From: Octopus sinensis
Lineage: Eukaryota
Assembly (NCBI RefSeq): GCF_006345805.1
Contig: NC_043000.1
Coordinates: 78,926,001-78,990,000, forward strand
Direction: 5' to 3'
DNA length: 64,000 nucleotides
In this document: in pieces, positions 1-64,000 of the stretch
How positions within the stretch are numbered: the stretch's first letter is position 1
Layout: every line of letters begins with the position of its first letter
Translations under genes and position numbers: made by a program
The notes under the pieces: model-generated
Told to the model about the DNA's origin: nothing
The model's input: only the letters and a program-made list of their open reading frames with translations
Database searches by the model: none

Positions 1-1
1 C

Positions 2-1561
2 GGAAAGGTATACCAAGAGGGTGAAGAATTCCAAGACAAATGTAATAGATGTAAATGTCTTTCTTCTGGCTATATTCAGTGTACTAATAACGTGTGTCAG
101 TGCCAGTATAATGGTAAAGACTACGACGTTGGAGTGAGTTTCAATGATGGTTGTAAGACTTGCACCTGTCAAACTACAGGAACAGTGCAGTGTAACAGTG
201 ATAGATGTGGCTGTTATTACAAAAAATCACAATATCAAGAGGGTCAAACTCTCACCGACGCTTGCAACACTTGCCGTTGTATAAACGGACAAGTAGATTG
301 TACAACAAGAGTCTGTCAATGTACTTACCAAGGACGGACCTATAATATTGGCCAAAGATTTGGTGAATGTGATGAATGTCAATGTTTGTTTAGTGGTACA
401 GTCCAGTGTTCTAACAAGCGATGCAAATGCATTTATAACGGAAATACCTACCGAATTGGAGAAACATTTCCAAACGGCTGCAATACATGCACGTGTAAAA
501 TTGATGGTAGTGTAGACTGCACTACAAATCCATGTACCTGTACATACAAACACAGGGTTTATAATATGGGACAGACATTCACTGATGACTGTAATACTTG
601 TACATGCCAACATAACGGTCAAGTTGCGTGCACACATAGAATGTGCAAATGTAGTTATAACAACCAGTTTTATAATATAGGTCAAACATTTAGAAAGGGG
701 TGTAATACGTGCACATGCCAAGCCGATGGTACCGTAGACTGCACTACAAATCCATGTACCTGTACTTACAATCATAAAGTTTATAATATCGGACAGGCAT
801 TCACTGATGACTGTAACACTTGTACATGTCAGCATAACGGACAAGTAGAGTGCACATATAAAACGTGTCGATGTACACGGAAAGGACGGTCTTATAAAAT
901 TGGTCAGACATTTCACGAAGATTGTAACCAATGCCAATGTTTATCAACTGGATATGTTCAATGTACAACCAAAGTTTGCAAATGTACTTACAACAACCAG
1001 CTTTATAATGTAGGTCAAACATTTAGACAAGGTTGTAATACATGTACGTGTGAAGTGAACGGTAGAGTCAGCTGTACTAATAACCCTTGTAATTGCTTAT
1101 ACAATGGAAACACATACGGAATAGGGGATTCATTTAGAAAGGATTGTAACAAGTGCACATGCAAAGCCGATGGTACTGTAGACTGCACTACAAATCTATG
1201 TACCTGCAATTACAACGGCAAGCATTACGACATTGGTTCTATATGGTATAATGATTGCAACAAATGTCAGTGCACTTCTGAGGGAAGGGTGGTTTGTGAA
1301 CAGAATACATGCACGAAACCCTGTATACACAAAGGAAAAACCTATTCTGCTGGCGAAACATTTAAAGATGACTGCAACACCTGTACATGCGGACAGTTTG
1401 GTCAAGTATCCTGTACTAAAATGTACTGTCCCCCAACTACATGCCAATATTATGGGAAAACTATCCCAGATGGAAAAACATTTATGACTCAAGATAGATG
1501 CAATGTTTGTCGATGTTCAAATGGAAATGTCAAGTGTACCAAATACGATTGTTATAAAGAG
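2..1561 (+). CDS. Copy A exon 2 (5'-truncated by window): tandem six-Cys VWC-subdomain/pacifastin-like repeat protein, repeats 3-16
   Basis: Open frame from nt 2 (GKVYQEGEEF...) with repeats C-x-Y-x-G-x2-Y-x2-G-x2-F-x3-C-N-x-C-x-C-x3-G-x-V-x-C-T-x3-C. It ends at a strong donor GAG|GTGAGT (1561/1562). Colinear without indels with copy B (position A + position B = 33279). Confidence 0.93.
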
Positions 1562-2210
1562 GTGAGTAAAGTTTTCTATTAGTTTTGATCTCCCTAATAT
1601 AACGTGTCTCATCCTTATATAGTTAGTCATTGTAAACAGAGAAAACAACAAAGAATTGAATAATGTTTAGCATAAACATTGCAATGCTCTCACTGCACTA
1701 CACTCTACTACATTGTCGTACAAACAAAATTGTATCAGCGATTCGATTTCTGTCTTTATTTGAAGTAGTTCAATTTCATTGACCCTACCATTATCTTGAA
1801 GAAAGCCAATGTTCTCTTCATTGTAAACACGAGATTTTGTATATCTGCATATATTCATCATGTATATGAAAATTATTAACTTTCAACGTTTCAACTAACT
1901 TTATTGCTACTCTTGTGAAATCAACAGACTAGCTTTCACATTGAATCATCATTGTAAGTAGAATTGCGATACAGAATTGTAAATTTGCTATATATTATCT
2001 CATGTTTCAGAATATAGTTCGTGAGTTAAGCTTTTCTGCGCCTGGTGAAATATTAATACTTTGTTGTAAAAGAATGTGATATATACAACTAATCTAATAT
2101 ACACATTTTGAAATATAAATCCAACTTGATACTTAGTCTATGTTATTGTTTTTAATTTGTATGTCCAATCTAATAAATATATTGATTTCTTGTAATTTTA
2201 TTCTTTTCAG

Positions 2211-2225
2211 AGGCGACGTTACTGA
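2211..2225 (+). CDS. Copy A terminal micro-exon (RRRY-stop)
   Basis: Acceptor ttttattcttttcag| followed by AGG CGA CGT TAC TGA, in phase 0 with the 1561 donor. Conserved in all three copies. Confidence 0.75.
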   Translation, partial: RRRY

Positions 2226-2290
2226 TGAAGAATAGTTAATTTATATTGATATTTTTAAGAATTGTAAATATTACAAACATAACGTTTTTA

Positions 2291-2296
2291 AATAAA
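2291..2296 (+). promoter_or_regulatory. Candidate polyadenylation signal of copy A
   Basis: AATAAA about 65 nt after the predicted stop, also present in copies B and C. The context is AT-rich, so chance occurrence is possible. Confidence 0.45.
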
Positions 2297-3645
2297 ACAT
2301 ATATCTGCCGAACCTTTTTGTTTGATTTATAACTGTTTGATTCAATACCATTTTAGATAATCAAGTAATCTATTTGAAGATCTCTGATGAAAAGCATTTC
2401 AATACTTGAATAATTGAATGATTTGTTGTTAACTACTTGTCTGATGGTTATTGTCATATCTTATCATGGAATGCATCTTACACTCGACCACAGTTGCTAT
2501 GTATGCCTGTTAAGCTTCTACATGTTTTTCGAGAGACTGTACAAACAAAGCTGCATATAGGTATATCAGTATGCAGAAGCATATTCTGATATAATGTATT
2601 GTGTTTAGTTAAACCACCTCTGGACTGCAAACATTTCCACGTCCTATTGCATGTCACGCAACGTATAATTATGAACATACAATAGTCGTCTTTTTTACGA
2701 ATTTGTTGATGACTGATGAGCGCAGCATCGGAAAGTCATATGCGGCCACAAATAATATTTGTTGGGTCAAGACATGAGACGAGTAAATCCTGAGGGAAGC
2801 AGTTGCTTTCATATTTCATATTTCCTTGTCTAAAAATCAAGAAAAGCTGAGTATGCTGCCCAAAGAAACAAACTCGTCTACTATTTTCAGATCTGTTACT
2901 TCAAGTTATGCTTCCTTGCGTAGTTTGGAATATAACAAGTAAACTTGCTCAGACTAATGCCGAATATATATACGTTACAAGATACAAAAAATAATTCAAG
3001 AATATACACACACGCACGCACACAGACACTTACACAGATACATACACATGCACAAACACATACACAAACACCCAAAAACACACACGCACACACAAATACA
3101 CACACACACAGGAATATACTCACATCCACGCACACATGACTCCACACATATATACACTTAATTGCATACACATATTTGACAAGCTTCTTTTAGTTTGCGC
3201 CTACGAAATCATCTTACAAGCTTCACGGGTGGCCTGAAGTTATATTAGATGTCAGTCACAAAAGCAGCTGTGTAATGGGGCTTAGCCCAGAACCACATTG
3301 TTCGTATGTCAGAAACACATACCAAACTTTCTGTTGCTCTCTCTTCTCTCTCTCTCTCTCTCTCTCTTTCTCTTTCTATTTACGTATCTGCCTGTCCTTC
3401 TGTATGTCTGTCTGTCTATCTATCTGTATATATATGTGTGTGTGTGTGTGAGTGAATGCCTGTGTATGCATGTGTGTGAATATGTGTGTTTGAATGTGTG
3501 TGTGTGAGTGTGTGTGTTTATATAATTATATATAGAATCAACAGATGGGATCCAATGATTCTAATTACAGAAAACACTTTGTCGCCCTCAAATGATTTCA
3601 GCTTACACCCGGAAACTTTTAACGTGGATGATAGATATTTATATA

Positions 3646-3830
3646 TTAACAGACGATCAATATTCAAGTATAAATATATAGATATTTATATATTAAATGA
3701 AGGATGTATATTCAAGTATAAATTTATAGATATTTATATATTAACAGACGATAAATATTCAAGTATAAATATATAGATATTAACAGACGACGATTATTCC
3801 AAGAACAAATATATTAATGTTTATATATTA
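3646..3830. repeat. ~47-bp AT-rich minisatellite with alternating units (arm A)
   Basis: Units acagacgatcaatattcaagtataaatatatagatatttatatattaa and atgaaggatgtatattcaagtataaatttatagatatttatatattaa. Confidence 0.85.
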
Positions 3831-3879
3831 ACAGAGCAAATTTACGCAGAACAATTCTACCTTGATATATCCTAGCATC

Positions 3880-4170
3880 AGGGTCTGAAATGACAAATAT
3901 TTATCTCTCTATCTTAAAGACCCAGGTCGGATCTATCCAATGTTTATTTGTTTCCATTACTGGTTTATATTCTGGTGAACTACCTCAGCTAGCATTATGA
4001 AATAATCCTATTCCGAATCTTTCTCCCTCCAAGTTAAATCTTTACCTAAACTTTTCTTTAAAATCCTAAAATCTACCTTCCCATCAAACCTTAGATATTA
4101 CCTTATCTTCAATAAAACATCTATTAAAATCTCGTATTCGACCACGCCTAATTTAGGATCCATAATTTGT
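3880..4170 (+). mobile_element. Decayed PLE RT-thumb/linker remnant (shared by arms A, B, C)
   Basis: Translates to LKSTFPSNLRYYLIFNKTSIKISYSTTPNLGSII, resembling the PLE post-RT region. Confidence 0.55.
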
Positions 4171-4720
4171 TTTCCACAAAATTGTACGTATGTATATGTG
4201 TGTGTATACATATATATATATATCTATATATATATATACATACATATACATACATGATTATATAAATACATACATACCTTCCTACATACATACATTATAT
4301 ATGTACTTATGTACCTATTCGTTTGGAGGGATGAATGGTTTTTCGAACCTTTTATCTTGTACTAGCATCAAGTAAAGAGAAGAGAGGTAACTCTGATTTA
4401 ACAAAGAATTACCTCCGAACTATGAGATGAGATTTCATAGGAATCCAATCAAAACATTGTGAATCATGACGCTTTTCGGCAACCCAGCTAAGATAAAATG
4501 TGGATTAGAAGCACCAATCACTGACTGAGAATATGCAATACTTACTAGTTCAAATGAGATATGCCTGAGAGATATTTAAATGCGTTAATGTACATCCTCG
4601 TTGCTGAGAAAATAGTTAACACCATGTTGTTTAGGGTCCTTCTAAAGTGATACGCCAGTTCAGCTCCAGAAAATAGGGAAGGCCAACTCTTGGTATGATA
4701 GCCATAAATACCAGAGTGCC

Positions 4721-5254
4721 ATGTTCGTTGACACCACCCCTGGAGGTGAACTGGCGTATCGCTTTAGAAGGACCCTAGACAAACTTAAGCTAAGAATTAA
4801 GGTTGTTGAAAAGACAGGCAACCCTATCAAATCTATAATTGGTAGAACCTATCCTTTTAGTAGAACCCCCTGTACAGATAGGTACTGTACTGTATGTAGA
4901 TTTAGCCCACAAACAAACTGTAAAGCCAGAAATGTAGTCTATAGTATAAGATGTATAGAGGGACGATGCAGTAACAAGACAACGACATACGTAAGGGAAA
5001 CGGCAAGAAGCATAGGAGAGCGGGTAAATGTGCATTGGAGACAACTCAAGGAAGGTAAAAGCTCATCGATTCTGTACCAACACGCCGAACAAGAACACGG
5101 GGGATCAATCAATAACATAGAAATTAAAATATTATCCACACATAGATCAGATGCAACAATTAGACAAATTACAGAAGCTACACACATAATAGAAAATAAA
5201 CCTAGCCTGAATAGAAAACTAGAATGGAGCACTAACACACAACACAACATATGA
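4721..5254 (+). mobile_element. PLE GIY-YIG endonuclease fragment with preceding Cys knuckle (arm A only)
   Basis: C..CTVC...NCKARNVVYSIRC...YVRETARSIGERVNVH...SILYQH...IRQITEATHIIENKPSLN matches the GIY-YIG domain of Penelope-like elements. Confidence 0.85.
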
Positions 5255-6320
5255 CGATAGAGTATCCTGAAAACATAATAAATACACAGATAAATAAATA
5301 AATAATAAATAACTATATGTATGTATGTGTGTGTATATGTGTGGATATATATGTGTGTGTGTGTACTTGTTTACGTATTTATATATGTTTATATACATAA
5401 ATGGCGGTGCCCCAGCATGGCCACAGCTCATTAGCTGAAACTGGAAAAATCAAAATCAAAAATCAAATACATATATATATGAGCGTGAGCATGTATATAT
5501 TTTTTGTATTTTGAAATTAGCTATTTCATCTTTAAATGTTTCGACTGGAGATGGTTTGGGCCATGTTTAGTTTAATGGCGTAATTTGTATTGGATGGTAG
5601 TTCCCATTCATAGTTTTGTTTATAGTACTTGTGGTATTTATTTGGTTCTATATTACTAAGAATGGAGAGTTTATATGGGTGTGTGGTTGAGTGTCTGCGG
5701 CTGCTGGATGTTGTTTCTCCTCTTTGTTGATGTCTTGCTGAGAGTGTGCGTTTATGAATGAGTGATTGTGTGTGTGTGTGTGCGGCTGTGCATAGGTGGA
5801 GTGTGGAAGTGTGGGGCTGCATTGTTGGATATGTCCATGTCTGTGTGTGTGTGTGTGTATGTATGGATGTATGTATCTGTGTGTGTGTGTGTGTTTGTGT
5901 GCGTGTTTATGTGTGTTTTTATGCATACATATGTATATGAGCGTGAGCATGTATACATATTTTTTGTATTTTGAAATTAGCTATTTCATCTTTAAATATG
6001 AGAAATTAAATATATTACGTCTTCATTATATACTATCTTTTATAGAGATTATTTTAGATTTTGATTATAATATTTATATATTTTTTCATTGATAATTTAT
6101 ATATATTAGTCATTTCAAATATCTATATAAGTAGATACAGACTAAAATGGATATTAGAATATGGATTTTCTACCTTATAAATTAAAGTTAATATTTAACA
6201 TTGTAGTTGAATTTGATATAATCATATTTATTAATAGAGTTTATTATAAGTAAATTATTTTTTTTAGATTATATAGATTATCTATATCTTAAAAATATTG
6301 ATTATATTTTAGATTTGAAA

Positions 6321-6384
6321 CCACCTGAAGAATGTCTACTACTCAAAGATGTGATGAAAAGAAGACATGAAACGATCGTAGTGG
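6321..6384 (+). ncRNA. Type I hammerhead ribozyme in PLE pseudo-LTR
   Basis: CCAC-CTGAAGA-ATGTCT-loop-AGACAT-GAAAC-GATC-GTA^GTGG. Stem I is CCAC/GTGG, stem II is ATGTCT/AGACAT, stem III is the palindrome ACGATCGT, and the core is intact. Confidence 0.85.
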
Positions 6385-6632
6385 ATATTAATAATTGTTA
6401 AATTTCTAAATTATATAAATTAATTTATGTATTGGATTAAGTCTTTCTTTTTTTGATTTGCATAATAGTGGTTTTGTCTCTAATTTGTATAATATAATAT
6501 TTTACTATAAATTGGATTCAATCCTAAATCTGATTTTCCCCTGTAAGTTTGGATTTATTCCCTAATATTTATTATTAATTAATATATTGATAAATTGCGT
6601 ATATTGAGTGTAATACCTCAACTTCGTAAATT

Positions 6633-8108
6633 ATGGAATTTACAGGTAAGATAGAACCGCTATTTTGGAATTCATCATAGAAGGATATTCCAATACCCTC
6701 TAGAAAGGAATTTACTTTGAAACTTATTAATAATATTAAGGATTTTGTTTCTAGAATTAAATGGAAAGCTTACTATTATAACTATTATATATCTAATCTT
6801 AATGATAGTATGAATGATAATTTTACCTCTAATTTTAAATCGAAAAAGGACCCTCTATTTAATAAAGAATTACAAATACTAGAAGATAATATTTGGAAGG
6901 TTGTGAAAAATATTAAATTTCATAAATACCCAAATAGAAATAATGAATATTTAAGAAATTGAGCAATTAAAATTAAAGATATGAGAAATATGGATGGTAT
7001 TATAGTACAATCTGATAAAAGTAGGAATTTATATAAATTGGATGTTAAATTATATGATAAACTTTTAGAGAAAGAAATAATTAAAAAATATAAAATTGTT
7101 CCAGATAGTAAACTTTATAATATTAATAAGGCCTCTAAATTAGTAATGATAAACTATGAATTGGATAATAAAACTGAACCTTATGTACCTATGCACCCCA
7201 GAATTACTCTGAAGGACAATAAAGATAATTTTTATTCAGACCCTAAAGTTGGATTAATTTGTCCATGTAATTCTGACCTAGGTAAATTAAGTAAACTTAT
7301 TTTAGATAAATATATTAATAAATTAAATAAACTTAATTACTTAAAATTATGGTTTCGTAATAATAGTACTTTGAAATGGTTTAATAATATTAAAGATAAA
7401 AATCGTTATAAATTTATTCAAATAGATATAGATAATTACTATTCTTCTATTAATGAAATTGTGTTTAATAAGGCCCTTATTTTTGCAATGAATAAAGTGG
7501 GAATGACATTTGAAGAAGTTAATGTAATTAAAATGGCTAGGAAATCGCTCATTAAATATAAAAATAAATTATGGGCTAGGAAAGATACTAGGGATTTTTT
7601 TGATATACCTATGGGAGCACCTGATTCTGCACAAGCTACTGATTTAGTAGGTATTTACCTTTTATCTGAACTCCAATTAGAAAATTTAAAGATAGAGGGT
7701 GGTTTATATAGGGATGACCTTCTACTAATTACAAAGAATTGCACTAATAGGAACCTAGAAGTATATAAGAAAAAACTTTATATTTTCTTTAAAAGATATG
7801 GTTTAAGTATTACTATATATAATGAGAATTCTAATGTTAATTATTTAGATGTTAATTTTAATCTAATTACAGGTAAAACACAACCATATCATAAAATTAA
7901 TGAGAACCTTAGATATATAAATGTTAATAGTAATCACCCACCTTCAATTAAAAAATCGTTGATTAATAATATAAGTAAACGTATATCATTACTTTCTTAT
8001 GATATAGAGATTTTTAATAAACATGCTCCTTATTATAATGAGGCCCTTAGAGAGGCAGGTTATAATAGTAATATTAAATTTTATAATAAATTAATGATAA
8101 AGATATAA
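6633..8108 (+). pseudogene. PLE reverse transcriptase, one frame with two premature stops
   Basis: ATG at 6633, TAG at ~6678 and TGA at 6960 are in the same frame as track ORFs 6717 and 6981. Motifs KDIPIPS, IKWKAY, DIDNYYSSI, GAPDSAQATDL, YRDD, YLDV, NHPPSIKKSL. Confidence 0.88.
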
Positions 8109-8839
8109 CTAATAATTTTAGAGATAAAAATATTAATAATAATTATAATAATTTTGTTAATAATAGTGGTAAAAATTTTAGAAATTATAAAAATAAAAAT
8201 AAAATAAATAAAAATAAGAATAAAAACAAGAATAAAAATAAAAAAATAAAAAAATAATAATAATAAAAATAAAATTAATAACTTTAATAATTCTTTAAAT
8301 GTTGTACATTGATATAAATCGGGTGTGCATGGGTGGAGTGTGGAAGTGTGGGGCTGCATTGTGGGATATGTCTGTGTGTGTGTATGTATGGATGTATGTG
8401 TGTGTGTGTGTGTTTGTGTGCGTGTTTATGTGTGTTTATATGCATACACATGTATATGAGCGTGAGCATGTATATATATTTTTATTTTTGTATTTTGAAA
8501 TTAGCTATTTCATCTTTAAATGAGAAATTAAATATATTACGTCTTCATTATATACTATAGTTTATAGAGATTTTAGATTTTGATTATAATATTTATATAT
8601 TTTTTCATTGATATTTTATATATATTAGTCATTTCAAATATCTATATAAGTAGATATAGACTAAAATGGATATTAGAATATGGATTTTCTACCTTATAAA
8701 TTAAAGTTAATATTTAACATTATAGTTGATTTTGATATAATCATATTTATTAATAGAGTTTATTATAAGTAAATTATTTTTTTCAGATTACATAGATTAT
8801 CTATATCTTAAAAATATTGATTATATTTTAGATTTGAAA

Positions 8840-8903
8840 CCACCTGAAGAATGTCTACTATTCAAAGATGTGATGAAAAGAAGACATGAAACGATCGTAG
8901 TGG
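8840..8903 (+). ncRNA. Type I hammerhead ribozyme in second pseudo-LTR
   Basis: Same motif as 6321-6384, with one substitution in loop II only. Confidence 0.85.
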
Positions 8904-9006
8904 ATATTAATAATTGTTAAATTTCTAAATTATATAACTTAATTTATGTATTGGATTAAGTCTTTCTTTTTTTGATTTGCATAATTGTGGTTTTGTCTCT
9001 AATTTG

Positions 9007-9041
<35 letters not shown>

Positions 9042-9590
9042 CGATTCAATTTATTATTATTACTACTAGTATTGTTGTTATACATACATACATACATACA
9101 AACAAGCATATGTAATGATAATAATGGGTGGATGTAAACACATGAACAAAATAAGAATAAACAAAAACAACAAAAACAAAAACCAAAAAAAAAAATACAA
9201 AACAAAAAATACAAAATACAAAATACAAATTACATGAACGTATAAAATTACAAATTACATGAACACATATAAACAGAATATACAAATATTACAGGCATTC
9301 CCCACATACACACACTAAATAAACATAAACGCACATAGAGATATAAGCATGCGCAAATGAAGACATACAATAGAAATACAAAATGGCTGACGGTTAGTAA
9401 GGAGAGACACAAATAAGTGAGAAGAAAACAAAAGACCACTGATGCGGTCACAGGAGTGTGAGGAAAGAACTCTGGCCGAAATAAGATTAAGAATAATGTA
9501 AAAAAATAAGTAACACTGAAGCAAAGTAACACCAAATATAGTGCGTGTGTTTTTATTGGCTAGACTGGCAAAATGACCATTCCGAAATAT

Positions 9591-9666
<76 letters not shown>

Positions 9667-9828
9667 GTATACATAGATACATACATACATATATACATAC
9701 ATTTATGTATATATATGTGTGTGTGTTGTGTGTGTGTATATATAAATATAAACAAAGGGTAACAATTTTTAAAAATAAAATTTTTACAATTGGTCAGAAT
9801 GCTTATTAAATGTCAGAGGAAATATATA

Positions 9829-10224
9829 TCTATATATATAAAAGTGAAGTTGTGTGAGTGTCTGTCTCCTACGAATTAGATTCCTAACTACTCCCACATT
9901 TTGCGGTGCAGTTTAACCAAAACCGGGTATCTTATAGTCATGATTCATATCGAGCCCTTCTGGGTATTAGCGCGCGTCTACGATGAGTCTACCATTTTAA
10001 AAATAATTTACAATAATATTTTTCCATTTTAAAGCATATTTTTTAAATAAAGGGAAGTAACTCTCTAAAAATGTCTACGATGACTCAACGATTTAAAAAA
10101 AAATTTAGCATAATTTTTTTTCCATTTTTAATGCATTTCTTGCTATTTTTTGGCTATAACTCTCTAAAAATGCTTTATAGTTATTTCCCTTACAAACCCG
10201 AGCAACGCCGGGCGATACTGCTAG
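9829..10224 (+). mobile_element. Non-autonomous Helitron (arm A only)
   Basis: 5' TC, 3' hairpin cccgagcaacgccggg then CTAG, inserted between A and T with no TSD. The empty site is visible in arms B (~27640) and C (~60095). Confidence 0.85.
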
Positions 10225-10519
10225 TTTCTATATAATAGAGTATAGAAATTTATACACGGAGAGAATACCACCATGTCGACTTCTAATATGCTGAAAAGTG
10301 CAGTCAAAAGCGAAACCACGTTGCGTGTAGTCGAGCAGGATATGTAAATGAATAAAAATCTCAGTTACCCCTCTACCTATGAGTTTCTGAATTAATGACC
10401 AAACAAAATAATTAATTAGTCAATAAATTCATTTATTAACCATCCGTGGTTCACCAGTAGAGTCGCTGGGAAATGTATAATTATAAAACTATAATTATGA
10501 AACACTTCACTTAGGCGTT

Positions 10520-11600: not shown

Positions 11601-11625
11601 ACTATTTACAGCTACATATAACTAT

Positions 11626-11878
11626 GTGGATGCGCGTGGTTAAGTGGTTAGGGTTTCAGCATTTTGACTGTGATTTCGATTCCTGGACCGGGAGACACGT
11701 TGTGTTCTTGAGCAAAACACTTCATTTCAGGTTGCTCCAGTCCACTCAGCTGGCAAAAATGAATAACACTGAGATGGACTGGCGTCACGTCCAGCTGAGT
11801 CACACATACGCCATAGAAACCGGGAAACCGGGCCCAAGAGCTTGGCTAGACTTTAAAAGGGCGCATTTATTTATTATT
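11626..11878 (+). mobile_element. tRNA-derived SINE (family 2); arm copies at 25975-26223 (-) and 62429-62680 (+)
   Basis: A-box gtggttaagtgg and B-box-like tttcgattcc. An independent copy lies at 35928-36185. Confidence 0.8.
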
Positions 11879-11879
11879 T

Positions 11880-13258: not shown

Positions 13259-13340
13259 GACCTGAATAATAATAATAATATAAATAATAATATCGAAAAA
13301 TACCTAAGGAATAAGAATCCAGTTCCGAAATTTCGCCAAG

Positions 13341-14731: not shown

Positions 14732-14807
<76 letters not shown>

Positions 14808-51944: not shown

Positions 51945-51985
<41 letters not shown>

Positions 51986-53064
51986 ATGGGTTGTGCGACA
52001 CAGAAAGTGTGGTGTGTAAGTGAAGTGCTTTTGTTAGTGTGTGTAAAGAGACAGACAGAGTGAAAGACAGAAATAACTGAACTTTTTTTATTCACTTTTT
52101 GTAGTGAGTGACTGAGAGAGAAAAGAGAGAGAGAGGTTATGTATGTATATATGTATGTATGGCTTCAGTGACACACGCACACAAAAACACATACCTACGT
52201 ACACCTAAAGCACGCACACACACACACAAGCGGAGCGCGAACTTCAAAATTTTGGTAGTATTAATTTGCGAGCGTACTTCTAAGCGCGCGTAATTGAAAG
52301 TTTTCACTATGATATCATCACGTGCGAAAAAATTCGAAGGGTTTTGAACAATTGAGATACACATGTCACGCCTGTATTGAAACCATTGCTAAGCTGCCGT
52401 AATTGCTTAATTAAGACTTTGTTTAAATTGAAAGGGGCAAATATGTGACGAGGTTGAAAAAAAATACCCCAGAAAAAAAATGTACTGCTGGTATTTATAT
52501 AATTCACTACTATTTTGCTACAATGTCATGAAAAAGAAAAAATTTAGGTATGTAAATCGAATTCGCCACCCCCTTTTCCCCGTTCGCGTTTGTGTAAAAA
52601 AAATTATTATTTAAGTTTTAAAAATTATTTACTTTGTTCAAAAAATATTAATATTAATTAATTTTCAAGAATTATTTAATTTTATTCTGTAAAATAGTAA
52701 TTAATTCATTTATCTGTAAATCCGCGAGGTTGTTACTCAGGCACCTAGAATGGTAACCTTCAACTAACACTATCTCCTCCGAGACCCTGCGGCGCAAGTT
52801 GACCAAAATTGAGAGTATGGTAGAAGAAGGGTTGCTCTTCCTTCCGTAGAACATAAAATTCAAATCGGACCATGTTAACACCAAAAATTATTTACATCAA
52901 AAAGATGCTTTTTTCTATGAAAATCCCTATTTTTTACGATTTTTTCACTGCTGTGTCGCCACTTTTCGGTGTATTTCGACCAGAAAAATGTTCACAAAAT
53001 TTTTACTTTTCAAAATTACAATTCCAGCGGGTCGAAACAAACCCGAGCAACGCAATACTGCTAG
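51410..53064 (+). mobile_element. Longer non-autonomous Helitron
   Basis: 5' a|TCtcttattataaaag and 3' cgggtcgaaacaaacccgagcaacgcaatactgCTAG|t, sharing its 3' end with 9829-10224. Confidence 0.6.
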
Positions 53065-53144
53065 TATATATATATATTTACATACCCACACCTATTTTGA
53101 ATATCTTTCTATATACCTTTATATACTCACATGTAAAGCCTTAT

Positions 53145-53244
53145 NNNNNNNNNNNNNNNNNNNNNNNNNNNNNNNNNNNNNNNNNNNNNNNNNNNNNNNN
53201 NNNNNNNNNNNNNNNNNNNNNNNNNNNNNNNNNNNNNNNNNNNN
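53145..53244. other. Assembly gap (100 N)
   Basis: Run of N. Confidence 1.
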
Positions 53245-53311
53245 CAGTAGTTAACTTTTTCCTGTGGTTTATGAGAAATAATTATCATTGATGTTTTTTT
53301 CCTTTACACAG

Positions 53312-55114
53312 ACGAATGTAACATATGGAAGAAAGTATGGAGGAAGATTCAAGATCGACTGCACACGTGTGTATGTGGTGAATATGGCAAAGCAGTCTGT
53401 ACAAATTTGCGTTGTGATTACGGCAGGAATCTACTTGTATCTATCAAGGTAGACGTTACAGAGTAGAAGGACATTCCGCATCCTGTAATACATGTGAATG
53501 CAAACACGGTGGTCAGGTACAATGTAGCAACAAAGACTGCACGAAACGATGTACTTACAACGGAAAGGTAAACCAAGAGGGTGAAGAATTCCAAGACAAA
53601 TGTAATAGATGTAAATGTCTTTCTTCTGGTTATATTCAGTGTACTAATAACGTGTGTCAGTGCCAGTATAATGGTAAGACTACGACGTTTGAGTGAGTTT
53701 CAATGATGGTTGTAAGACTTGCACCTGTCAAACTACCGGAACAGTGCAGTGTAACAGTGATAGATGTGGTTGTTATTACAAAAATTCGCAATATCAAGAG
53801 GGTCAAACTTTCATTGACGCTTGCAACACTTGCCGTTGTATAAACGGACAAGTAGATGTACAACAAGAGTCTGTCAATGTACTTACCAAGGACGGACCTA
53901 TAATATTGGCCAAAGATTTGGTGAATGTGATGAATGTAATGTTTTGTTTAGTGGTACAGTCCAGTGTTCTAACAAGCGATGGCAAATGCATTTATAACGG
54001 AAATACCTACCGAATTGGAGAAACATTTCCAAACGGCTGCAATACATGCACATGTAAAATCGATGGTAGTGTAGACTGCACTACAAATCCATGTACCTGT
54101 ACATACAAACACAGGGTTTATAATATGGGACAGAAATTCACTGATGATTGCAATAATTGTACATGTCAACATAACGGTCAAGTTGCGTGCACATATAGAA
54201 TGTGCAAATGTAGTAATAACAACCAGATTTATAATATAGGTCAAACATTTAGAAAGGGATGTAATACGTGCACATGCCAAGACAATGGCACCGTAGACTG
54301 CACTACAAATCCATGTACCTGTACTTACAATCATAGAGTTTATAATATCGGACAGGCATTCACTGATGACTGTAATACTTGTACATGTCAGCATAATGGA
54401 CAAGTAGACTGCACATATAAAACGTGTCGATGTACACGGAAAGGACAGTCTTATAAAATTGGTCAGACATTTCACGAAGATTGTAACCAATGCGAATGTT
54501 TATCAACTGGATATGTTCAATGTACAACCAAAGTTTGCAAATGTACTTACAACAACCAGCTTTATAATGTAGGTCAAACATTTAGACAAGGTTGTAATAC
54601 ATGTACGTGTGAAGTGAACGGTAGAGTAAGCTGTACTAATAACCCTTGTAATTGCTTATACATGGAACACATACGAATAGGGGATCATTTAGAAAGGATT
54701 GTAACACGTGCACATGCAAGCCGATGGTACTGTAGATGCATACTACAAATCTATGTACCTGCAATTACAACGGCAAGCATTACGACATTGGTTCTATATG
54801 GTATAATGATTGCAACAAATGTCAGTGCACTTCTGAGGGAAGGGTGGTTTGTGAACAGAAAACATGCACGAAACCCTGTATACACAAAGGAAAAACCTAT
54901 TCTGCTGCGCGAAACATTTAAAGATGACTGCAACACACCTGTACATGCGGACAGTTTGGTCAAGTATCCTGTACTAAAATTACTGTCCCCAACTACATGC
55001 ATATTATGGAAAACTATCCCAGATGGAAAAACATTTATGACTCAAGATAGATGCAATGTTTGTCGTTGTTCAAATGGAAATGTGAAGTGTACCAAATACG
55101 ATTGTTATAAAGAG
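53312..55114 (+). pseudogene. Copy C exon 2, frameshifted in this assembly (possibly an intact gene with consensus errors)
   Basis: Acceptor cag|AC at 53312 and donor GAG|gtgagt at 55114. It spans 1803 nt versus 1817 in B, with many single-base losses in short homopolymers. Confidence 0.7.
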
Positions 55115-55758
55115 GTGAGTAAAGTTTTCTATTAGTTTTGATCTCCCAATATAACGTGTCTCATCCTTATATAGTTAGTCATTGTAAACAGAGAAAACAA
55201 CAAAGAATGGAATAATGTTTAGCATAAACATTGCAATGCTCTCACTGTACTACACTCTACTACATTGTCGTACAAACAAAATTGTATCAGCGATTCGATT
55301 TCTGTCTTTCTTTGAAGTAGTTCAATCATTGACCCTACCATTATCTTGAAGGAAGCCAATGTTCTCTTCATTGTAAACACAAGATTTGTATATCTGCATA
55401 TATTCATTATCTATATGAAAATTATTAACTTTCAAGTTCAACTAACTTTATTGCTACTCTTGTGAAATCAACAGACTAGCTTTCGCATTGAATCATCATT
55501 GTAAGTAGCATTGCGATAAAGAATTGTAAATTTTACTATATATTATCTCACGTTTCAGAATATTGTTCGTGAGTTAAGCTTTTCTGCGCCTGGTGAAATA
55601 TTCATACTTTGTTGTAAAAGAATGTGATATATACATCTAATCTAATATACGCATTTTGAAATATAAATCCAACTTGATACTTAGTCTATGTTATTGTTTT
55701 TAATTTCTATGTCCAATCTAAAAAATATATTGATTTCTTGTAATTTTATTCTTTTCAG

Positions 55759-55773
55759 AGGCGACGTTACTGA
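55759..55773 (+). CDS. Copy C terminal micro-exon (RRRY-stop)
   Basis: cttttcag|AGGCGACGTTACTGA. Confidence 0.7.
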   Translation, partial: RRRY

Positions 55774-56260
55774 TGAAGAACAGTTAATTTATATTGATAT
55801 TTTTAAGAATTGTAAATATTACAAACATAACTTTTTAAATAAAACATATATATGCCGAACCTTTTTGTTTGATTTATAACTGTAAACTTCGTCAAGACCA
55901 TTTTAGATAATCGAGTTATCTATTTGAAGATCTGTGATGAAAAGCATTTCAGTACTTCAATAATTGAATGATTTGTTGTTAACTACTTTTGATTTATTGA
56001 CCCGGAAATGACGAATAATAGAGTTGGTCAAATTACTTCAGAATTACTCTTTTACTCTTTTACTCGTTTCAGTCATTTGACTGTAGCCATGCTGGAGCAC
56101 CGCCTTTAAGCCGAGCAAATCCACCCGAGGACTTATTCTTTGTAAGCCTAGTACTTATTCTATGTGTCATTTTTGCTGAACTGCTAAGTTACGGGGCCGT
56201 AAACACACCAGTATCGGTTGTCAAGCGATGTTGCGTGGACAAACACAGACACACAAACAT

Positions 56261-56306
<46 letters not shown>

Positions 56307-57439
56307 GCATATATATGACGGGCTTATTTCAGTTTCCGTATACCAAATCCACTCACATGGCTTTTATCTGCCCGAGGCTATAGTAGAAGACACTTGTCCA
56401 AGGTGCTACGCAGTGGGACTGAACCCGGAACTATGTGGTTGGTAAACCAGCTGCTTACCACACAGCCACTCCTTACATTGTCTATAGTTAGAAAAATTCA
56501 AGTCATGTGCTAGCGAATAAGAAATGACCCTCATGTCTGAGGGTTGTTGTCATATCTCATCATGGAATGCATCTTACATTCGACCACAGTTGCTATTTAT
56601 TCCTGTTAAGATTCTACATGTGTTTCGGGAGACTGCACAAACAAAGCTGCTTTTAGGTATATCAGTATGCAGAAGCATATTCTGATATAATGTATTGTGT
56701 TTAGTTAAACCACCTCTGGACTGCAAACATTTCCATGTCCTATTGCATGTCATGCAATGTATAATTATGAACATACAATAGTCGTCTTTTTTACGAATTT
56801 GTTGATGACTGATGAGCGCAGCATCGGAAAGTCATATGCGGCCACAAATAATATTTGTTGGGTCAAGACATGAGACAAGTAAATCCTGAGGGAAGCAGTT
56901 GCTTTCTGAAGTCTTTTCATATTTCCTTGTCTAGGAATCAATAAAAGCTGAGTATGCTGCCCAAGGAAACAAACTCGTCTACTATTTTCAGATCTGCTAC
57001 TTCAACTTATGCTTCCTTGCGTAGTTTGGAATATAACAAGTAAACTTGCTCAGACTAATGCCGAATATATATACGTTACAAAAAACAAAAAATCATTCAA
57101 GAATATACACACACATGCACGCACACACACACACATATACACAGATACATACACATGCACAGACACATACACAAACACCCAAAAACACACACGCACACAC
57201 AAATACACACACACACAGAGGAATATACTCACATCCACGCACACATGACTCCACACATACATACACATATGTGCATGCACATATTTTACAAGCTTCTTTT
57301 AGTTTGCCCCTACGAAATCCACTTACAAGCTTCACGGGTGGCCTGAAGTTATATTAGATGTCAGTCACAAAAGCAGCTGTGTAATGGGGCTTAGCCCAGA
57401 ACCACGTTGTTCGTATGTCAGAAAGACATACCAAACCTC

Positions 57440-57512
<73 letters not shown>

Positions 57513-57787
57513 CTATTTACTTATCTGCCTGTCCTTCTGTATGTCTGTCAGTCTATCTATATATATATGTATATATATATGTGTGTGTGTGTGTGAGTGA
57601 ATGCCTGTGTATGCGTGTGTGTGAATATGTGTGTTTGAATGTGTGTGTGTGAGTGTGTGTGTTTATATATTTATATATGGAATCAACATATGGGATCCAA
57701 TGATTCTAATTACAGAAAACACTTTGTCGCGCTCATGATTTCAGCTTATTCCCTGAAACATTTAACGTGGATAATAAATTTTTATAT

Positions 57788-57975
57788 ATTAACAGACGAT
57801 AAATATTCAAGTATAAATATATAGATATTTATATATTAAATGAAGGATGTGCATTCAAGTATAAATTTATAGATATTTATATATATACAGACGATCAATA
57901 TTCAAGTATAAAAATATAGATATCAACAGACGACGATTATACGAAGTACAAATATATTAATGTTTATATATTAAC
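57788..57975. repeat. Minisatellite (arm C)
   Basis: Homologous to 3646-3830. Confidence 0.8.
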
Positions 57976-58368
57976 AGAGCAAATTTACGCAGAACAATTC
58001 TACCTTGATATTTCCTAGCATCATGGTCTGAAATGACATATTTTTATCTCTCTATCTTAAAGACCCAGGTCGGATCTATCCAATGTTTATTTGTTTCCAT
58101 TACTGGTTTATATTCTGGTGAACTACATCAGCTAACATTATGAAATAATCCTATTCCGAATCTTTCTCCTTCCAAGTTAAATCTCTACCTAAAATTTTCT
58201 TTAAAATCCTAAAATCTAACTTCCCATCAAACCTTAAATATTACCTTATCTTCAATAAAACATCTATTAAAATCTCGTATTCGACCACGCCTAATTTAAG
58301 ATCCATAATTTATTTATCCACAAAATTGTATGTATGTATATGTGTGTGTGTATATATATATATATATC

Positions 58369-59136
58369 TGCTAGAATGGACAGGATACAAACAGGGGACA
58401 GTCATTAGTCAGAATATTGATGACGTCCTTTTCTGCTTGACTAGTCACCTAACAAGTACAGACAGGGGGCAGATCTAATGTAGCTATAAGTCGTGATTGG
58501 GCAGAATCTGGATGACGTCCCGTTCTGCTTGACTAACGAAGCGACTGGTCAAGACAGGAAACAGACAAGAGGCAGTTATAATACAGCGATTGGTCAAAAT
58601 GATGATGACGTCCCGTTCTACTTGACTAAAGCCACCTAACGAAACGATTGGTCAAAACGTTGATGACGTCACGCTACGCAGGACTGACCACCTAACAGGC
58701 ATTATAAAATCGAGCAATTCACAAGATTCACTAGAACCACCCAGCGAACACCCAACATGGGTCATCACAATTGCTTAAGGTAAAAATGAATTCCTCGCTC
58801 TTTCGGAAACATCAATCTTCTGTATTGACTGCTTTCCACCACTTTGATCTGTTTTTTGTATTGAATACGTATCGCCACCATGGGCCACTGCATCGAACAC
58901 TTTGAACATATAGCATGAATGAACTTACTTCAAACTATATATCAACTATACATGAACTCTAAGATGTCTGACTCCGTTGTGTATTATAAATGAATTTCTT
59001 GTGTTTGACGGCATGAGCTGTCTTTTTTTATATAACTTTTTTTGATAAGGTTCATTTCAGGAACTGAAACATGTTATAATGTATATATAAAATAAAAAAT
59101 TGTATAATATAGCAGCGTTTTCGAACTTCATTTTTT

Positions 59137-59139
<3 letters not shown>
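58369..59139 (+). mobile_element. Putative solo LTR (arm C only)
   Basis: TG...CA ends, four enhancer-like repeats (ATTGG/ATTAG plus GATGACGTC), TATAAAA at 58703 and AATAAA at 59091. No clean TSD. Confidence 0.55.
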
Positions 59140-59176
<37 letters not shown>

Positions 59177-59769
59177 ATATATATACATACACGTGATTAT
59201 ATAAATACATAAATATCTACCTACATACATACTTTATATATATGTATCTATGTACCTATCCTTTTGGAGGGATGAATGGTTTTTCGAACCTTTTATCTTG
59301 TACCAGCATCAAGTAACGAGAAGAGAGGTAACTCTGATTTAACAACGAATTATCTCCGAACTAAGTGAGGAGGTTTCAGTCATAGGAAACCAATCAAAAC
59401 ATTGTGAATTATGACGCTTTCGACAGCCCGGCTAAGATAAAATGTTGATTAGAAGCACCAAGCACTGATTGAGAATATGCAATACTTACTAGTTCAAATG
59501 AGATATGCCTGAGAGATATTTAAATGCGTTGATGTACATACTCGTTGTTGAGACAATAGTTTACACCATTTTCATTAGTCTTTTTGGAGTTCCTCTCTTC
59601 GCGATGTTTGATGCTGAGGAGAGAAGTTACTACGAAATGCATGTATACATAAATCCAGAAGAGGTTGCTTCGAACTCATATATATTCGAACTCATATAAA
59701 ACAAGTTTATACGTACACATATGCATACGTACATGCGTATATATATGCACATGCATATATATATGCACC

Positions 59770-59887
<118 letters not shown>

Positions 59888-59896
59888 CGTACGTAT

Positions 59897-59933
<37 letters not shown>

Positions 59934-60290
59934 CATAGATACACATATACATACATTTATGTATATATATGTGTGTATGTGTGTGTGTTGTGTCTGTGTG
60001 TATATATAAATATAAACAAAGGGTAACAATTTTTAAAAAATAAAATTTTTACAATTGGTCAGAATGCTTATTAAAAGTCAGAGGACATATATATTTCTAT
60101 ATAATAGAGTATAGAAATTTATACACGGAGAGAATACCACCATGTCGACTTCTAATATGCTGAAAAGGGCAGTCAAAAGCGAAACCACGAAAAGAAAGAT
60201 TCTTATTTAAGGTACGTTACGTGTAGTCGAGAAGGATATGTAAATGAATAAAAATCTCACTTATCCCTATACCTATGTGTTTCTGAATTA

Positions 60291-60681
60291 GGAATAGGAG
60301 CACTCCGTCGGTTACGACGATGAGGGTCCCAGCTGATACGATCAACGGAACAGGTTGCTCGTAGAATTAACGTGCAAGTGGCTGAGCATTCCACAGACAC
60401 GTGTATCCTTAACGTAGTTCTCGAGGAGATTCAGCGTGACACAGAGTGTGACAAGGCCGGCCCTTTGAAATACAGGTACAACAGAAACAGGAAGAAAGAG
60501 TGAGAGAAGGTTGTGGTGAAAGAGTACAGCAGGGTTCACCACCACCCCCTGCAGGAGCCTTGTGAAGCTTTAGGTGTTTTCGCTCAATAAACACTCACCA
60601 TGCCCGGTCTGGGAATCGAAACCGCGATCCTACGACCGCGAGTCCGCTGCCCTAACCACAAGGCCATTGCGCCTCCACTGT
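60291..60681 (-). mobile_element. tRNA-derived SINE with 11-bp TSD (arm C only)
   Basis: Minus-strand head gtggaggcgcaatggccttgtggttagggcagcggactcgcggtcgtagg...tttcgattccc. TSD tttctgaatta at 60280-60290 and 60682-60692. Empty site in A at ~10385. Confidence 0.88.
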
Positions 60682-60977
60682 TTCTGAATTAATGATCAAA
60701 CAAAACAATTAATTAGTCAATCAATTCATTTATTAACCATCCGTGGTTCATCGGTAGAGTCCCTGGGAAATGTATAATTATAAAACTATAATTAGGAAAC
60801 TCTTCACTTAGGCGTTCTAAATTATCTGCTGATGTTGATATCTTCAACGATAAAGCCATATTTCATAGCTCTTCGTTACTTAAAGCAGGCTATAAAGAAA
60901 AAAATTTCCGATATTAACACTACTGAAAAAAATTCTGTCGCTACTCATCAGGACATGAAAACACGTCATAACGGTAA

Positions 60978-61483
60978 ACTATATATATAAAACTCTAGTT
61001 GTGTGAGTGTCTGTCCCCTTCGATTTAGATTCCTAACTCCTCCCACATTTTGCGGTGCAGTTTAACCAAATTCGGGTATCTTATAGTCGTGATTCATATC
61101 GAGCCCGTCTGACTATTAGCGCGCGTCAACGATGAGTCTACGATTTTTAAAATAATTTAACATCATTTTTTATTCCATTTTAATGCATAAAATGCATCGT
61201 GTGTCGATGGCGGCGGAGTTGGCGTCCACGCTCACAGCTGCACCTGTTTGCTTCTCCCCCTTCCCTCCCTCGTGAAGCTGTGGGGAAGGGAGTGTAAAGA
61301 AATCAACGTCGTAATGCGTTGTGAAGGAGACCAGCGTTATTTTAGAACAACGACTTCATGGCTTGAAGACACCAAAACAAAAATGGCTAAGAAAGCCCGA
61401 ATTTATAAGGGAAGTAACTCTCTAAAAATGCTTATATAGTTATTTCCCTTACAAACCCGAGCAACGCCGGGCGATACTGCTGG
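60978..61483 (+). mobile_element. Non-autonomous Helitron, same family as 9829-10224, at a different site (arm C only)
   Basis: Inserted at acggtaa|taacatt. Same gttgtgtgagtgtctgtc start and cccgagcaacgccgggcgatactg end, with CTGG terminus. Confidence 0.85.
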
Positions 61484-64000
61484 TAACATTATAAATTTTA
61501 GTTCGAAAAACAACACTAAATCGATAAATGAAATTTTGCAGTGTAAGGGAGATAACTGTTCTTTATATCCCACTACACGTAATAAAAATAAGTCTATGAC
61601 TTCTCAAGATAATTACTCTAATAACAAGGTCTATCCTAGTAAAACTGTTTGGTTGATAATTCCATATGGTAATCAGATCAAATCCCACTGCTCTTACCAG
61701 TTTCGTGAACCTATAGATAACAATTTTCCAAAATATCCAAGCTACCATTCCATTATTAATTCAAACGAAGTCAGGATAGGGTTTTTAAACACAAAAAACC
61801 TTTCACAAATCATCTCTTCGCATAACAAAAGTTGTTAAACTCAAATCCTCTAAACGAAAATAATAACATTGATATTAATAACGATAATACTTTGAACAAT
61901 ACTTTGAACAATAATAACAGTAATATTAATATTTCTGATAGAAATTCGAATCGTATTCGTTTCTTTAGCAGTAATTCTAAGACTAGGATCTCTGTTTTTG
62001 AATGAAAAATTACTTCCAGTTCTGAAGTCTTATTTTTAAATATGTAGTCAATCGTCTCAGTTGTCGAAAAGAATAAATAACCATTAATCTACATTTAGAC
62101 ATATCAATAAACGCAACAATACTGAGTATAGGACTTTAATTTGGTCTCTAAAGGAATATAATGAACAATTCGATCTTGAATGAATTATTCTATCTAGATC
62201 CTTCCCATATGACAAAGTAAATCTTTCTGCCCGCTCTGTAACGAAGAACAGTTTCTAGTCATTTTTTCGGAGAATACACTTGTAAACACGTTTATCGTTG
62301 TAAACTTTGGCAAAACATACCTTTAGTTCCTATAAGTAAATTCTAAAGACCTATAAAATTCGAACTGTAACTGTCATCTTACATTTCATTTTTGCTACAT
62401 ATAACTATTTACAGCTACATATAACTATGTGGATGCGCGTGGCTAAGTGGTTAGGGTGTCAGCATCATGACTGTGATTTCGATTCCTGGCCTGGGAGACG
62501 CGTTGTGTTCTTGAGCAAAACACTTCATTTCAGGTTGCTCCAGTCCACTCAGCTGGCAAAAATGAGTAACACTGAGATGGACTGGCGTTCCGTCCAGCTG
62601 AGTCACACATACGCCATAGAAACCGGGAAACCGGGCCCAAGAGCTTGGCTAGGCTTTAAAAGGGCGCATTTATTTATTATTTTAAGTAAGGCAAAGCTAT
62701 AAAATATGGCTTTATCGTTATAGAATATGGCTTTATCGTTATAGAATATGGCTTTATCAACATTAGCAATCTTGAAAGTGTAAGTGAAATATTTCTTGTT
62801 ATAGCCCTTGAATGGTAACTGAAGGAGCTAACGTATTTTAACTTTGTTGATGGTTTATGATATGAGGAAGAAGAAAAATAACATAAGTTAAAGGTGATAT
62901 CTAAAATGTTGGCTTTAGTGATGTTATCATCGAAAATAATAATGAAGCCCATATTTCGGAAAATTTAACCAACCTGTTTTTAATCCTTTGTAATGTTTGT
63001 TCAGAAACATTATGAAAGGGGCTTAGCTATGTGTCCGCCATTATCACCGATAAAAACCAATATATACTTTGAGAATTTGGCTTTAGGATCAACACTACTA
63101 AAACCAACACTATGGCTTCGATATGTTGATGACACCTCTATACTCTGGCCCCACCAGGAAGATGTCCAAGTGCTGTTAGATCATGTTAACTGAATAAAGC
63201 CATCCATACAGTTGACAAAAGGAAAAAGACAATCATCTAGCATTTCTGGACGTATTAATAACACGCACCAAGTATGGATTCAGGACATCCGTATACCGCA
63301 AGTCGACCTTCACTGGACGATACCTCAACTTCAATCCCCACCATCAATACAGTGCATAGGGGGGGATTGCTCAGTGCCTAAAACATTGAGCAAAGAATAT
63401 ATGTAGCGATCGTGATGCACACCATGATGAAATGATCAAACTCATTAACAATCTATTAAGCACCAACTACCCACAAAACATACTATCCACCCCATTTATA
63501 AAGAACAGGGTGGATGAAACCAATAAACTGTCCATTGTCTGTCTACCCTATTTGAAAAGCCTCTCCGGAACGAAACAAAAAATACGCAGCCATATGACAT
63601 CAGGACTGTCTCCAAGAGCAATACAACACTTTGCAAATATCTCCTTCACGTAAAACCACCTATAGTAGAGAATATGACCAAAAACTGCGTGTACTCCACG
63701 CCATGCAGCTGTGGTAGGTTATACAAAGGCGAAACATGCTACCCCTCAAAATAAGGGGAGAGGAACATCGCAAAGCTGAGACATGAGGAGATATTGATCA
63801 ATCGATTATAGCTGATCATGTATGGAAAAATGGAGACTACCTCTCCCCTTGGGCTAATATTAAAATAATAGACAGAGAACACCACTGAAAAATACGAAAA
63901 CTAAAAGAAGTAGCACACATGCTAAGATACAACAACCTCCTAAGCAGACTGAGTGCCAATATGAATATGGAAGCAGGTATTAAGGAAGGATAGGAAAATA

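Follow-up and report, generated by a model that had tools for sequence, protein, structure and literature searches.

Whether a promoter flanked by long inverted repeats is a switch, or simply a by-product of duplication, is the question raised by a gene cluster of the cephalopod Octopus sinensis. The cluster lies in a stretch of 64,000 nucleotides (nt; NCBI RefSeq assembly GCF_006345805.1, contig NC_043000.1, positions 78,926,001 to 78,990,000 of the forward strand), hereafter the window, whose G+C content is 34.6%. A previous sequence-only reading had described two pairs of inverted repeats with two promoters between them, and had proposed that recombination between the repeats changes which promoter drives which gene. 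Our analysis points to a plainer answer. The window very probably holds three young paralogs of a two-exon gene for a secreted protein with 16 pacifastin-like domains, left by passive segmental duplication and patchy concerted evolution. The gene is laid out as a TATA promoter with a signal-peptide exon, one intron, and a single 1.83-kilobase (kb) exon encoding the domain array (hereafter signal exon and array exon). Nothing indicates that the inversion is regulated or used as a switch, and no new mechanism is called for; the locus takes its place among clustered pacifastin-like paralogs and among gene-bearing inverted duplications, both of them known kinds.

Self-BLAST and a repeat search both showed that one segment is present three times in the window, in the order forward, reverse, forward, with kb-long matches far beyond chance. 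The three copies are referred to as arms A, B, and C, of which A is cut by the start of the window and C by its end:

1-17636, plus strand: arm A, copy 1 of the duplicated segment (self-BLAST blocks inverted to B and direct to C).
17637-24885, no strand: spacer between A and B, 7,249 bp, with microsatellites, a local inverted repeat, and a mariner-type remnant, and with neither array nor signal exon.
24886-33594, minus strand: arm B, inverted copy, 8,709 bp (self-BLAST).
53245-64000, plus strand: arm C, at least 10,756 bp, a copy direct to A and inverted to B (self-BLAST).

Each arm contains an array exon, the 3′ untranslated region, and 3′ flanking or intergenic DNA rich in transposable elements. 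Arms A and B are inverted and paired tail to tail, with A 1-2453 matching B 33278-30829 at 97.8% and collinear blocks continuing to A 17636 and B 24886. Arms B and C are inverted and paired head to head (B 30300-33594 against C 56504-53245, 95.1%), with more blocks on to B 25493 and C 63191, and A and C are direct repeats of 90-96% identity. Arm A is twice as long as arm B because of about 10 kb of private insertions relative to B, at 4626-9586 and 12359-16972. The segment between B and C covers 33595-53244, about 19.6 kb including 100 N. The double inverted-repeat layout reported previously is therefore real, with coordinates right to within a few bases. The A/B palindrome around its 7.25-kb spacer was recovered, as was the geometry of the inverted B/C pair, which flanks the ~19.6-kb segment with two outward-facing modules, each of a predicted promoter and a signal exon (ATG at 37224 and 43118). 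A foldback or chimeric-read origin of the A/B palindrome was considered and is out, given arms that differ by 2-8% and by kb-scale transposable element insertions, and a unique spacer of 7.2 kb.

The arms had also been called near-identical, which overstates their resemblance. Over chained blocks, the pairs compare as follows:

A/B: 6.6 kb aligned, gapped identity 95.1%, substitutions 3.3%.
B/C: 6.4 kb aligned, gapped identity 94.7%, substitutions 3.3%.
A/C: 7.7 kb aligned, gapped identity 94.0%, substitutions 3.9%.

Single blocks range from 87 to 98% identity (top block 97.8%), an ungapped stretch of 1,855 nt scored 99% in the repeat search, and perfect tracts reach at most 319 bp (A/B), 207 bp (B/C), and 133 bp (A/C). 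Only about 6.6 of the 8.7 kb of B could be aligned to A, owing to the private insertions of A. Palindromes have been defined by arms of at least 8 kb and at least 99% identity (PMC8327919). The octopus arms reach this length, though only ~6.4-6.6 kb can be aligned between the pairs, and the weighted identities of A/B (95.1%) and B/C (94.7%) fall short of 99%.

A tblastn search with the B protein found exactly three array exons and two signal exons within the window, and nothing else. The gene features are as follows:

1-1582, plus strand: array exon of gene A, partial, beginning at about codon 85 of the B exon (open reading frame (ORF) 92..1582; stop codon TAG at 1580-1582).
2172-2296, plus strand: two AATAAA signals of gene A, 589 and 708 nt past the stop codon.
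31697-33534, minus strand: exon 2 of gene B, encoding 16 tandem six-cysteine domains of 34-37 amino acids (aa) (stop codon TAG at 31697-31699).
33535-37172, minus strand: intron 1 of gene B, 3.6 kb, starting with GTAAGT (acceptor AG ends at 33535).
37173-37224, minus strand: coding part of exon 1 of gene B, MLYKLLLVIVAISCVNS plus 1 nt, phase 1, then GTAAGT (ATG at 37224; in frame with exon 2).
37321-37330, minus strand: candidate TATA box of gene B, CTATATAAAG, ~100 nt upstream of the ATG, within the promoter module 37084-37819.
43011-43020, plus strand: candidate TATA box of gene C, GCTATATAGG, ~100 nt upstream of the ATG.
43118-43169, plus strand: coding part of exon 1 of gene C, MLYKLLLVIVAISCANS plus 1 nt, phase 1, donor GTAAGT (ATG at 43118).
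53312-55135, plus strand: exon 2 of gene C, broken as assembled by 17 short insertions or deletions (indels).

The long ORF of arm B spans 33577-31697 on the minus strand, and its acceptor lies in the context …TTCCTTTACAG, with the AG ending at 33535. Splicing exon 1 to exon 2 of gene B gives an uninterrupted coding sequence of 1,890 nt for 629 aa with 97 cysteines, to which the exon of gene A is 97.9% identical (tblastn). In gene C, the acceptor context is …CCTTTACACAG, with the AG at 53310-53311, and the putative intron 1 is at least 10 kb long, including an assembly gap. The AATAAA signals are conserved: gene B has them at 31105 and 30986, 589 and 708 nt past the stop codon as in gene A, and gene C has one at 55838 (702 nt). 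The products, which we expect to be transcribed and secreted, are also close, as the signal peptides of B and C differ at one of 17 residues and the arrays at about 5% of residues, with 31 non-synonymous changes in ~600 codons.

The promoter/exon-1 modules of genes B and C are homologous (37084-37819 against 42145-43258), with the upstream homology on the C side split by an insert at 42470-42866 resembling a short interspersed nuclear element (SINE). They differ by 13.3% substitutions in the core and by 24.8% farther upstream. A sensitive homology search of intron 1 of B against intron 1 of C returned just this module and dispersed repeats. In gene B, intron 1 also contains a compound (ACAT)n/(AT)n/(AC)n microsatellite of ~600 bp (33628-34197) that adjoins the arm boundary.

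The mature protein is made of 16 tandem domains of 34-37 residues each, with linkers mostly of a single residue. The repeats are centred on CxxCxC and follow the consensus CxYNGxxYxxGxTFxxxCNTCTCxxxGxVxCTxxxC. Pfam matched them to Pacifastin_I (E = 2.2e-80, 264.5 bits against a cutoff of 27.9, 14 stretches) and to VWC (PF00093; E = 5.5e-60, 200 bits against a cutoff of 27.6, 11 stretches). A full VWC domain has ten cysteines with a C-terminal subdomain. The octopus repeats, with six cysteines in 34-37 residues, correspond only to the N-terminal, FnI-like part of VWC and to the E module of VWF/mucins. A sequence search of the PDB gave weak matches to the E/TIL region of mucin-5AC and to locust and crayfish pacifastin inhibitors. 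An AlphaFold2 model of a single repeat, built from an alignment of the 16 repeats, had a mean predicted local distance difference test score of 89 and three short strands, the pacifastin fold being a small three-stranded sheet. Foldseek ranks 1-20 in the PDB were all solved pacifastin inhibitors (probability 0.98-1.00, 40-48% identity, root-mean-square deviation 0.8-2 Å, template-modelling score 0.55-0.76, query- or target-normalised), followed by VWF/mucin/NEL modules (VWF/mucin E modules). As the domain is just 36 residues long, the Foldseek E-values are weak (0.03-0.2).

The published pacifastin pattern is Cys1-X9-12-Cys2-N-X-Cys3-X-Cys4-X2-3-G-X3-6-Cys5-T-X3-Cys6 (PMC2689174). This pattern (PF05375) fits the repeats from Cys2 onward, and their Cys1-Cys2 loop of 16 residues lies outside the range of 9-12. 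Molluscs are rich in "ancestral-type" pacifastin homologs with a longer N-terminal hairpin (PMC13388995), with which the 16-residue loop agrees. The reactive site of pacifastins lies between Cys5 and Cys6 (PMC2689174), and in the octopus protein the residues of this loop vary over the 16 domains (TNLR, SNKD, TYRM, TYKT, TKMY, TKYD, and others). The protein most likely acts as a multi-headed inhibitor of serine proteases, or else as a related binding protein of the extracellular space, the inhibitory activity itself being predicted. Multi-domain pacifastins are known from the crayfish light chain with nine unprocessed domains, a 42-domain protein of Trichoplax, and clustered insect paralogs (PMC2689174). 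The octopus protein resembles them in consisting, after its signal peptide, solely of tandem six-cysteine domains with the pattern ...C-N-x-C-x-C-x3-G-x3-C-T-x3-C, in belonging to clustered, recently duplicated paralogs, and in lacking dibasic linkers between its 16 domains, so that it would stay a string of domains like crayfish pacifastin (PMC2689174). It departs from them in its Cys1-Cys2 loop of 16 rather than 9-12 residues, its single-residue linkers, and its 16 domains in one exon; it is also at most 40% identical to any database protein.

The closest database matches (38-40% identity) were marine transcript or metagenome records, and the closest named homologs were VWFC-domain proteins of Octopus bimaculoides (33-35%). 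An O. bimaculoides homolog, P0014, is encoded at a locus (L001) as a multi-exon distant paralog with a same-strand neighbour; another homolog, P0002, sits on a 3.5-kb transcript-like contig. No orthologs of the cluster gene were found among the homolog loci examined. Pacifastin-type proteins have been reported in the posterior salivary glands of octopus (PMC7693380), and clustered, rapidly duplicating pacifastin genes have been described in insects (PMC2689174). For a cephalopod, the window adds a lineage-specific cluster of multi-domain pacifastin-like genes that had no name before and whose identity to database proteins is no more than 40%. Within each array exon, a 222-bp two-domain unit is tandemly duplicated at ~83% identity (A 462-645 / 684-867, B 32412-32817, C 54021-54426). 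As this duplication is present in A, B, and C, the array grew before the gene was triplicated.

We then compared the divergence of the different parts of the copies. The promoter modules are 4-7 times more diverged (13.3-24.8%) than the arms (3.3-3.9%), non-coding arm parts included. The relationships among the copies also shift along the arm. Over A coordinates 1-1250, odd-one-out sites number 9 for A, 7 for B, and 37 for C, so that A and B are closest, whereas over 2251-3500 they number 57, 25, and 27, and B and C are closest (contingency test of the switch, p = 2e-7). Low divergence of the arms relative to the promoters, together with these shifting relationships, indicates patchy concerted evolution. 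Interlocus gene conversion or old crossovers, between inverted copies as well, would produce such a patchwork. A single past crossover does not suffice as its sole cause, because the pattern of sites shifts at more than one point along the arm. We suggest that non-allelic exchange, through patchy gene conversion, past crossover, or both, may have maintained or increased the likeness of the arms beyond that of the promoters. The arm-to-arm exchange proposed previously thus stands as far as the contrast of 3.3% with 13-25% divergence and the mosaic carry it, and gene conversion would be part of the history of arms that are neither near-identical nor enriched in GC. Two segments are common to A and C and absent from B (A 4205-4625 / C 59142-59569 and A 12359-13161 / C 63192-64000). 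In a simple history, a head-to-head pair would have been tandemly duplicated, arm A being the C-type member of the upstream unit. Outside vertebrate sex chromosomes, the locus is a small and clean example of inverted and direct paralogs evolving in concert.

The status of copy C depends on the only run of N in the window:

53145-53244, no strand: assembly gap of 100 N, inside the putative intron 1 of gene C.

No coding sequence crosses the gap, the ORF 52872..53291 being a mechanical read through X residues. Homology of arm C to B starts at the first base after it (53245 against B 33594), the acceptor of exon 2 of gene C sits 67 bp past it, and the DNA to its left (52.9-53.14 kb) is non-coding and unrelated to the DNA beside arm B, which is the microsatellite. 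As the gap lies between the two contigs, the link between promoter C and array C is putative. Indels of 1-3 bp between B and C number 8, 2, 4, 7, 4, and 3 per 500 bp over 53245-56244, and 1, 1, 1, 0, and 0 beyond. Three-way alignments place this excess in C alone (19 events in 2.4 kb, most of them 1-bp deletions) and show none of it in the more distal blocks of arm C. The stretch 53245-56244 has the look of a contig end left unpolished or of a gap filled with raw reads.

The 17 frame-breaking indels in the exon as assembled could be taken to mean that copy C is a true pseudogene, and that the cluster consists of two live genes and one decaying. We consider this unlikely on the evidence of the substitutions, for which the ratios of non-synonymous to synonymous rates (dN/dS; Nei-Gojobori) are as follows:

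A-B: dN/dS 0.29, dS 0.030.
B-C: dN/dS 0.31, dS 0.070.
A-C: dN/dS 0.34, dS 0.067.

The substitutions of C carry the same signature of purifying selection as those of A and B, with no relaxation in B-C (0.31) relative to A-B (0.29). The excess of indels, moreover, also spans the non-coding 3′ flank and ends ~3 kb from the gap, and the remainder of arm C has a normal indel density. Since dN/dS of the C pairs is like that of A-B, the indels fit consensus errors at a contig end and hardly a pseudogene, and the frameshifts of gene C are probably assembly errors. Annotating its exon as a pseudogene would be premature without a check, and the main value of these observations lies in annotation and quality control.

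The same gap admits an assembly artefact, in which the contig from 53245 is an uncollapsed haplotype of A, or is misplaced or misoriented, so that B and C would not truly stand head to head and the signal exon at 43118 would have its real partner within the gap. Arm C does start exactly at the gap, the ~3 kb beyond it carry 2-8 short indels per 500 bp against 0-1 farther on, as is typical of a poorly supported contig end, and A and C are co-oriented and have in common the two segments missing from B. Substitutions between A and C (3.9%), however, are no lower than between A and B (3.3%), and kb-scale insertions distinguish A from C. A divergence of 3-4% is more than octopus haplotypes would show. 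The signal exon at 43118 is directed toward the gap, and an array exon lies 67 bp past it in the right orientation and with a B-like acceptor context. An orphan signal exon and an orphan array exon in matching orientation are what a correct join predicts. We accordingly regard an artefact as improbable and the scaffold join as probably correct.

Several points weigh against three paralogs shaped by duplication and patchy exchange. In the outer block 10681-12358, the copies are equidistant (31/25/31). The arms show no GC enrichment (32-36% against 35-36% in the spacers), and thus no sign of intense GC-biased conversion. The conversion signal comes partly from C-private substitutions in the low-quality zone, most of which are nevertheless probably real, to judge from their dN/dS of 0.31. 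The join to arm C spans a gap that is unsized, beyond which the first 3 kb are doubtful, so the exact B/C architecture depends on scaffolding. The promoters, splicing, and polyadenylation of the cluster genes are predicted from sequence, and the database search gave no homolog above 40% identity.

We next considered whether the segment between B and C could act as a promoter-swapping cassette. If B and C underwent an intrachromatid crossover, the segment 33.6-53.2 kb would flip and each promoter would be joined to the other array. Since the promoters both point outward, either orientation would yield two intact genes, and the inversion would therefore be tolerated. The geometry thus allows the promoter swap proposed previously; its use as a mechanism for changing expression or isoform is unsupported, with neither a recombinase nor defined sites and with arms of ~95% identity. 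Unless the two promoters are regulated differently, a swap would have little effect, because the signal peptides and the arrays are nearly the same. There is only a small chance that the cassette is a recurrent, still-segregating inversion by non-allelic homologous recombination (NAHR) that re-pairs two differently regulated promoters with two slightly different arrays. The cassette would then represent a natural polymorphism for promoter swapping, in a family of fast-evolving secreted proteins that may belong to the salivary or venom gland. Should its orientation turn out to be polymorphic, the locus would serve conveniently as an invertebrate model of NAHR inversions that leave genes undisrupted.

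A functional flip-flop, in which recurrent B/C recombination inverts the 19.6-kb cassette and the two states are exploited to change promoter-array pairing, we judge very unlikely. The permissive geometry, with two complete genes in either orientation, and the mosaic arm relationships, which show past exchange between copies, are compatible with it. But Pfam found no recombinase among 13 ORFs of the spacers, insertions, and arms, the only match being the partial mariner remnant in the A/B spacer, and no short exact inverted sites bound the B/C segment, whose boundaries are kb-long diverged arms with a microsatellite on one side and the gap on the other. The arrangement on the gap side is, moreover, putative, and the payoff would be small, with signal peptides 1/17 residues apart and arrays differing by ~5%. 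We know of no programmed promoter inversion of this kind in animals. In primate X palindromes, NAHR between inverted arms often inverts the spacer, but those arms are at least 99% identical (PMC8327919), compared with ~95% and a longest perfect tract of 207 bp for B/C.

Bacterial invertible promoter switches of the fim, hin, and shufflon types work with a dedicated site-specific recombinase and with inverted repeats that are short and exact. The octopus locus is like them in placing a promoter-bearing segment between inverted repeats, which was the logic of the sequence-only reading, and unlike them in that no recombinase or short exact repeats were found and the host is an animal. Mammalian X and Y palindromes, for which gene conversion between arms and spacer inversion by NAHR are documented (PMC8327919, PMC3723533), are a closer parallel. 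They likewise have kb-scale inverted arms that each carry a protein-coding gene copy, a unique spacer that an intrachromatid crossover would invert, and signs of exchange. Their arms, however, are at least 99% identical, whereas those of the octopus are ~95% identical, are broken by private transposable element insertions, have a third, direct copy, and show no GC enrichment. The human Xq28 FLNA-EMD region, as far as it is described in PMC8327919 after Small et al. 1997, is an inverted duplication with a neutral inversion polymorphism. On that description, inverted repeats flank a gene-containing segment in both cases, and inversion leaves the genes intact and is hence tolerated. The FLNA-EMD repeats, again as described there, are non-coding flanks of single-copy genes and have been observed in both orientations, whereas the octopus repeats comprise coding exons and are seen in one orientation in a single assembly.

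The weakest proposal, that read-through of the A/B spacer makes the palindrome a source of hairpin double-stranded RNA or small RNAs, is extremely doubtful, since inverted arms could pair within one transcript but transcription would have to run for >20 kb past AATAAA signals conserved 0.6-0.7 kb past both stop codons, through ~15 kb of arm A and the 7.2-kb spacer, and Rfam and tRNA scans of the window gave no match or other RNA feature.

Finally, we catalogued the transposable elements and other repeats. The A-private insertion at 4626-9586 is ~5 kb long and very AT-rich (22-24% GC over 6-10 kb). Direct repeats at 5783-6500 and 8320-9020 (724 bp, 93.6%) surround an ORF of 375 aa at 6981-8108 with a YRDD-type motif, and a further ORF of 177 aa lies upstream at 4721-5254; Pfam gave no match for either. 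The insertion is probably a retroelement, and on its motifs we would guess at a Penelope-like element. A weak relative of the C-terminus of the 375-aa ORF occurs antisense in all arms (A 11883-12131, B 25723-25968, C 62734-62961). In the putative intron 1 of gene C, the block 48000-52000 differs in composition, with a GC content of 0.44-0.46 against 0.35 elsewhere and a GC skew of about -0.38. Its ORFs at 49403-49738 and 49763-50311 had no Pfam match, and it is probably another transposable element.

The A/B spacer contains one recognizable transposase, ~370 bp from the outer end of arm B:

23880-24518, plus strand: decayed, partial remnant of a mariner-type transposase (Pfam Transposase_1, 1.5e-21, and DDE_3).

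Also in this spacer is a composite repeat (19210-20167) with inverted arms at 19406-19654 and 19919-20167 (95%) and direct repeats at 19210-19450 and 19670-19915 (91%), which may be a foldback-type element. A 47-nt minisatellite is located in the 3′ flank of each gene (A 3631-3781, B 28756-29096, C 57774-57923), with 3.2 copies in A and C and 7.2 in B. A SINE-like dispersed repeat of ~350-400 bp was found at 30332-30784, 39711-40081, 42467-42866, and 56044-56473, and also in O. bimaculoides (L001 26927-27270 and 54862-55419) at 75-89% identity. A dispersed repeat of ~260 bp with a 91-aa ORF (11624-11899, 25972-26227, 35925-36187, and 62427-62702) recurs in every arm and has one copy in intron 1 of gene B (85%), and it matches the same O. 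bimaculoides locus at 72-76% over 129-212 bp.

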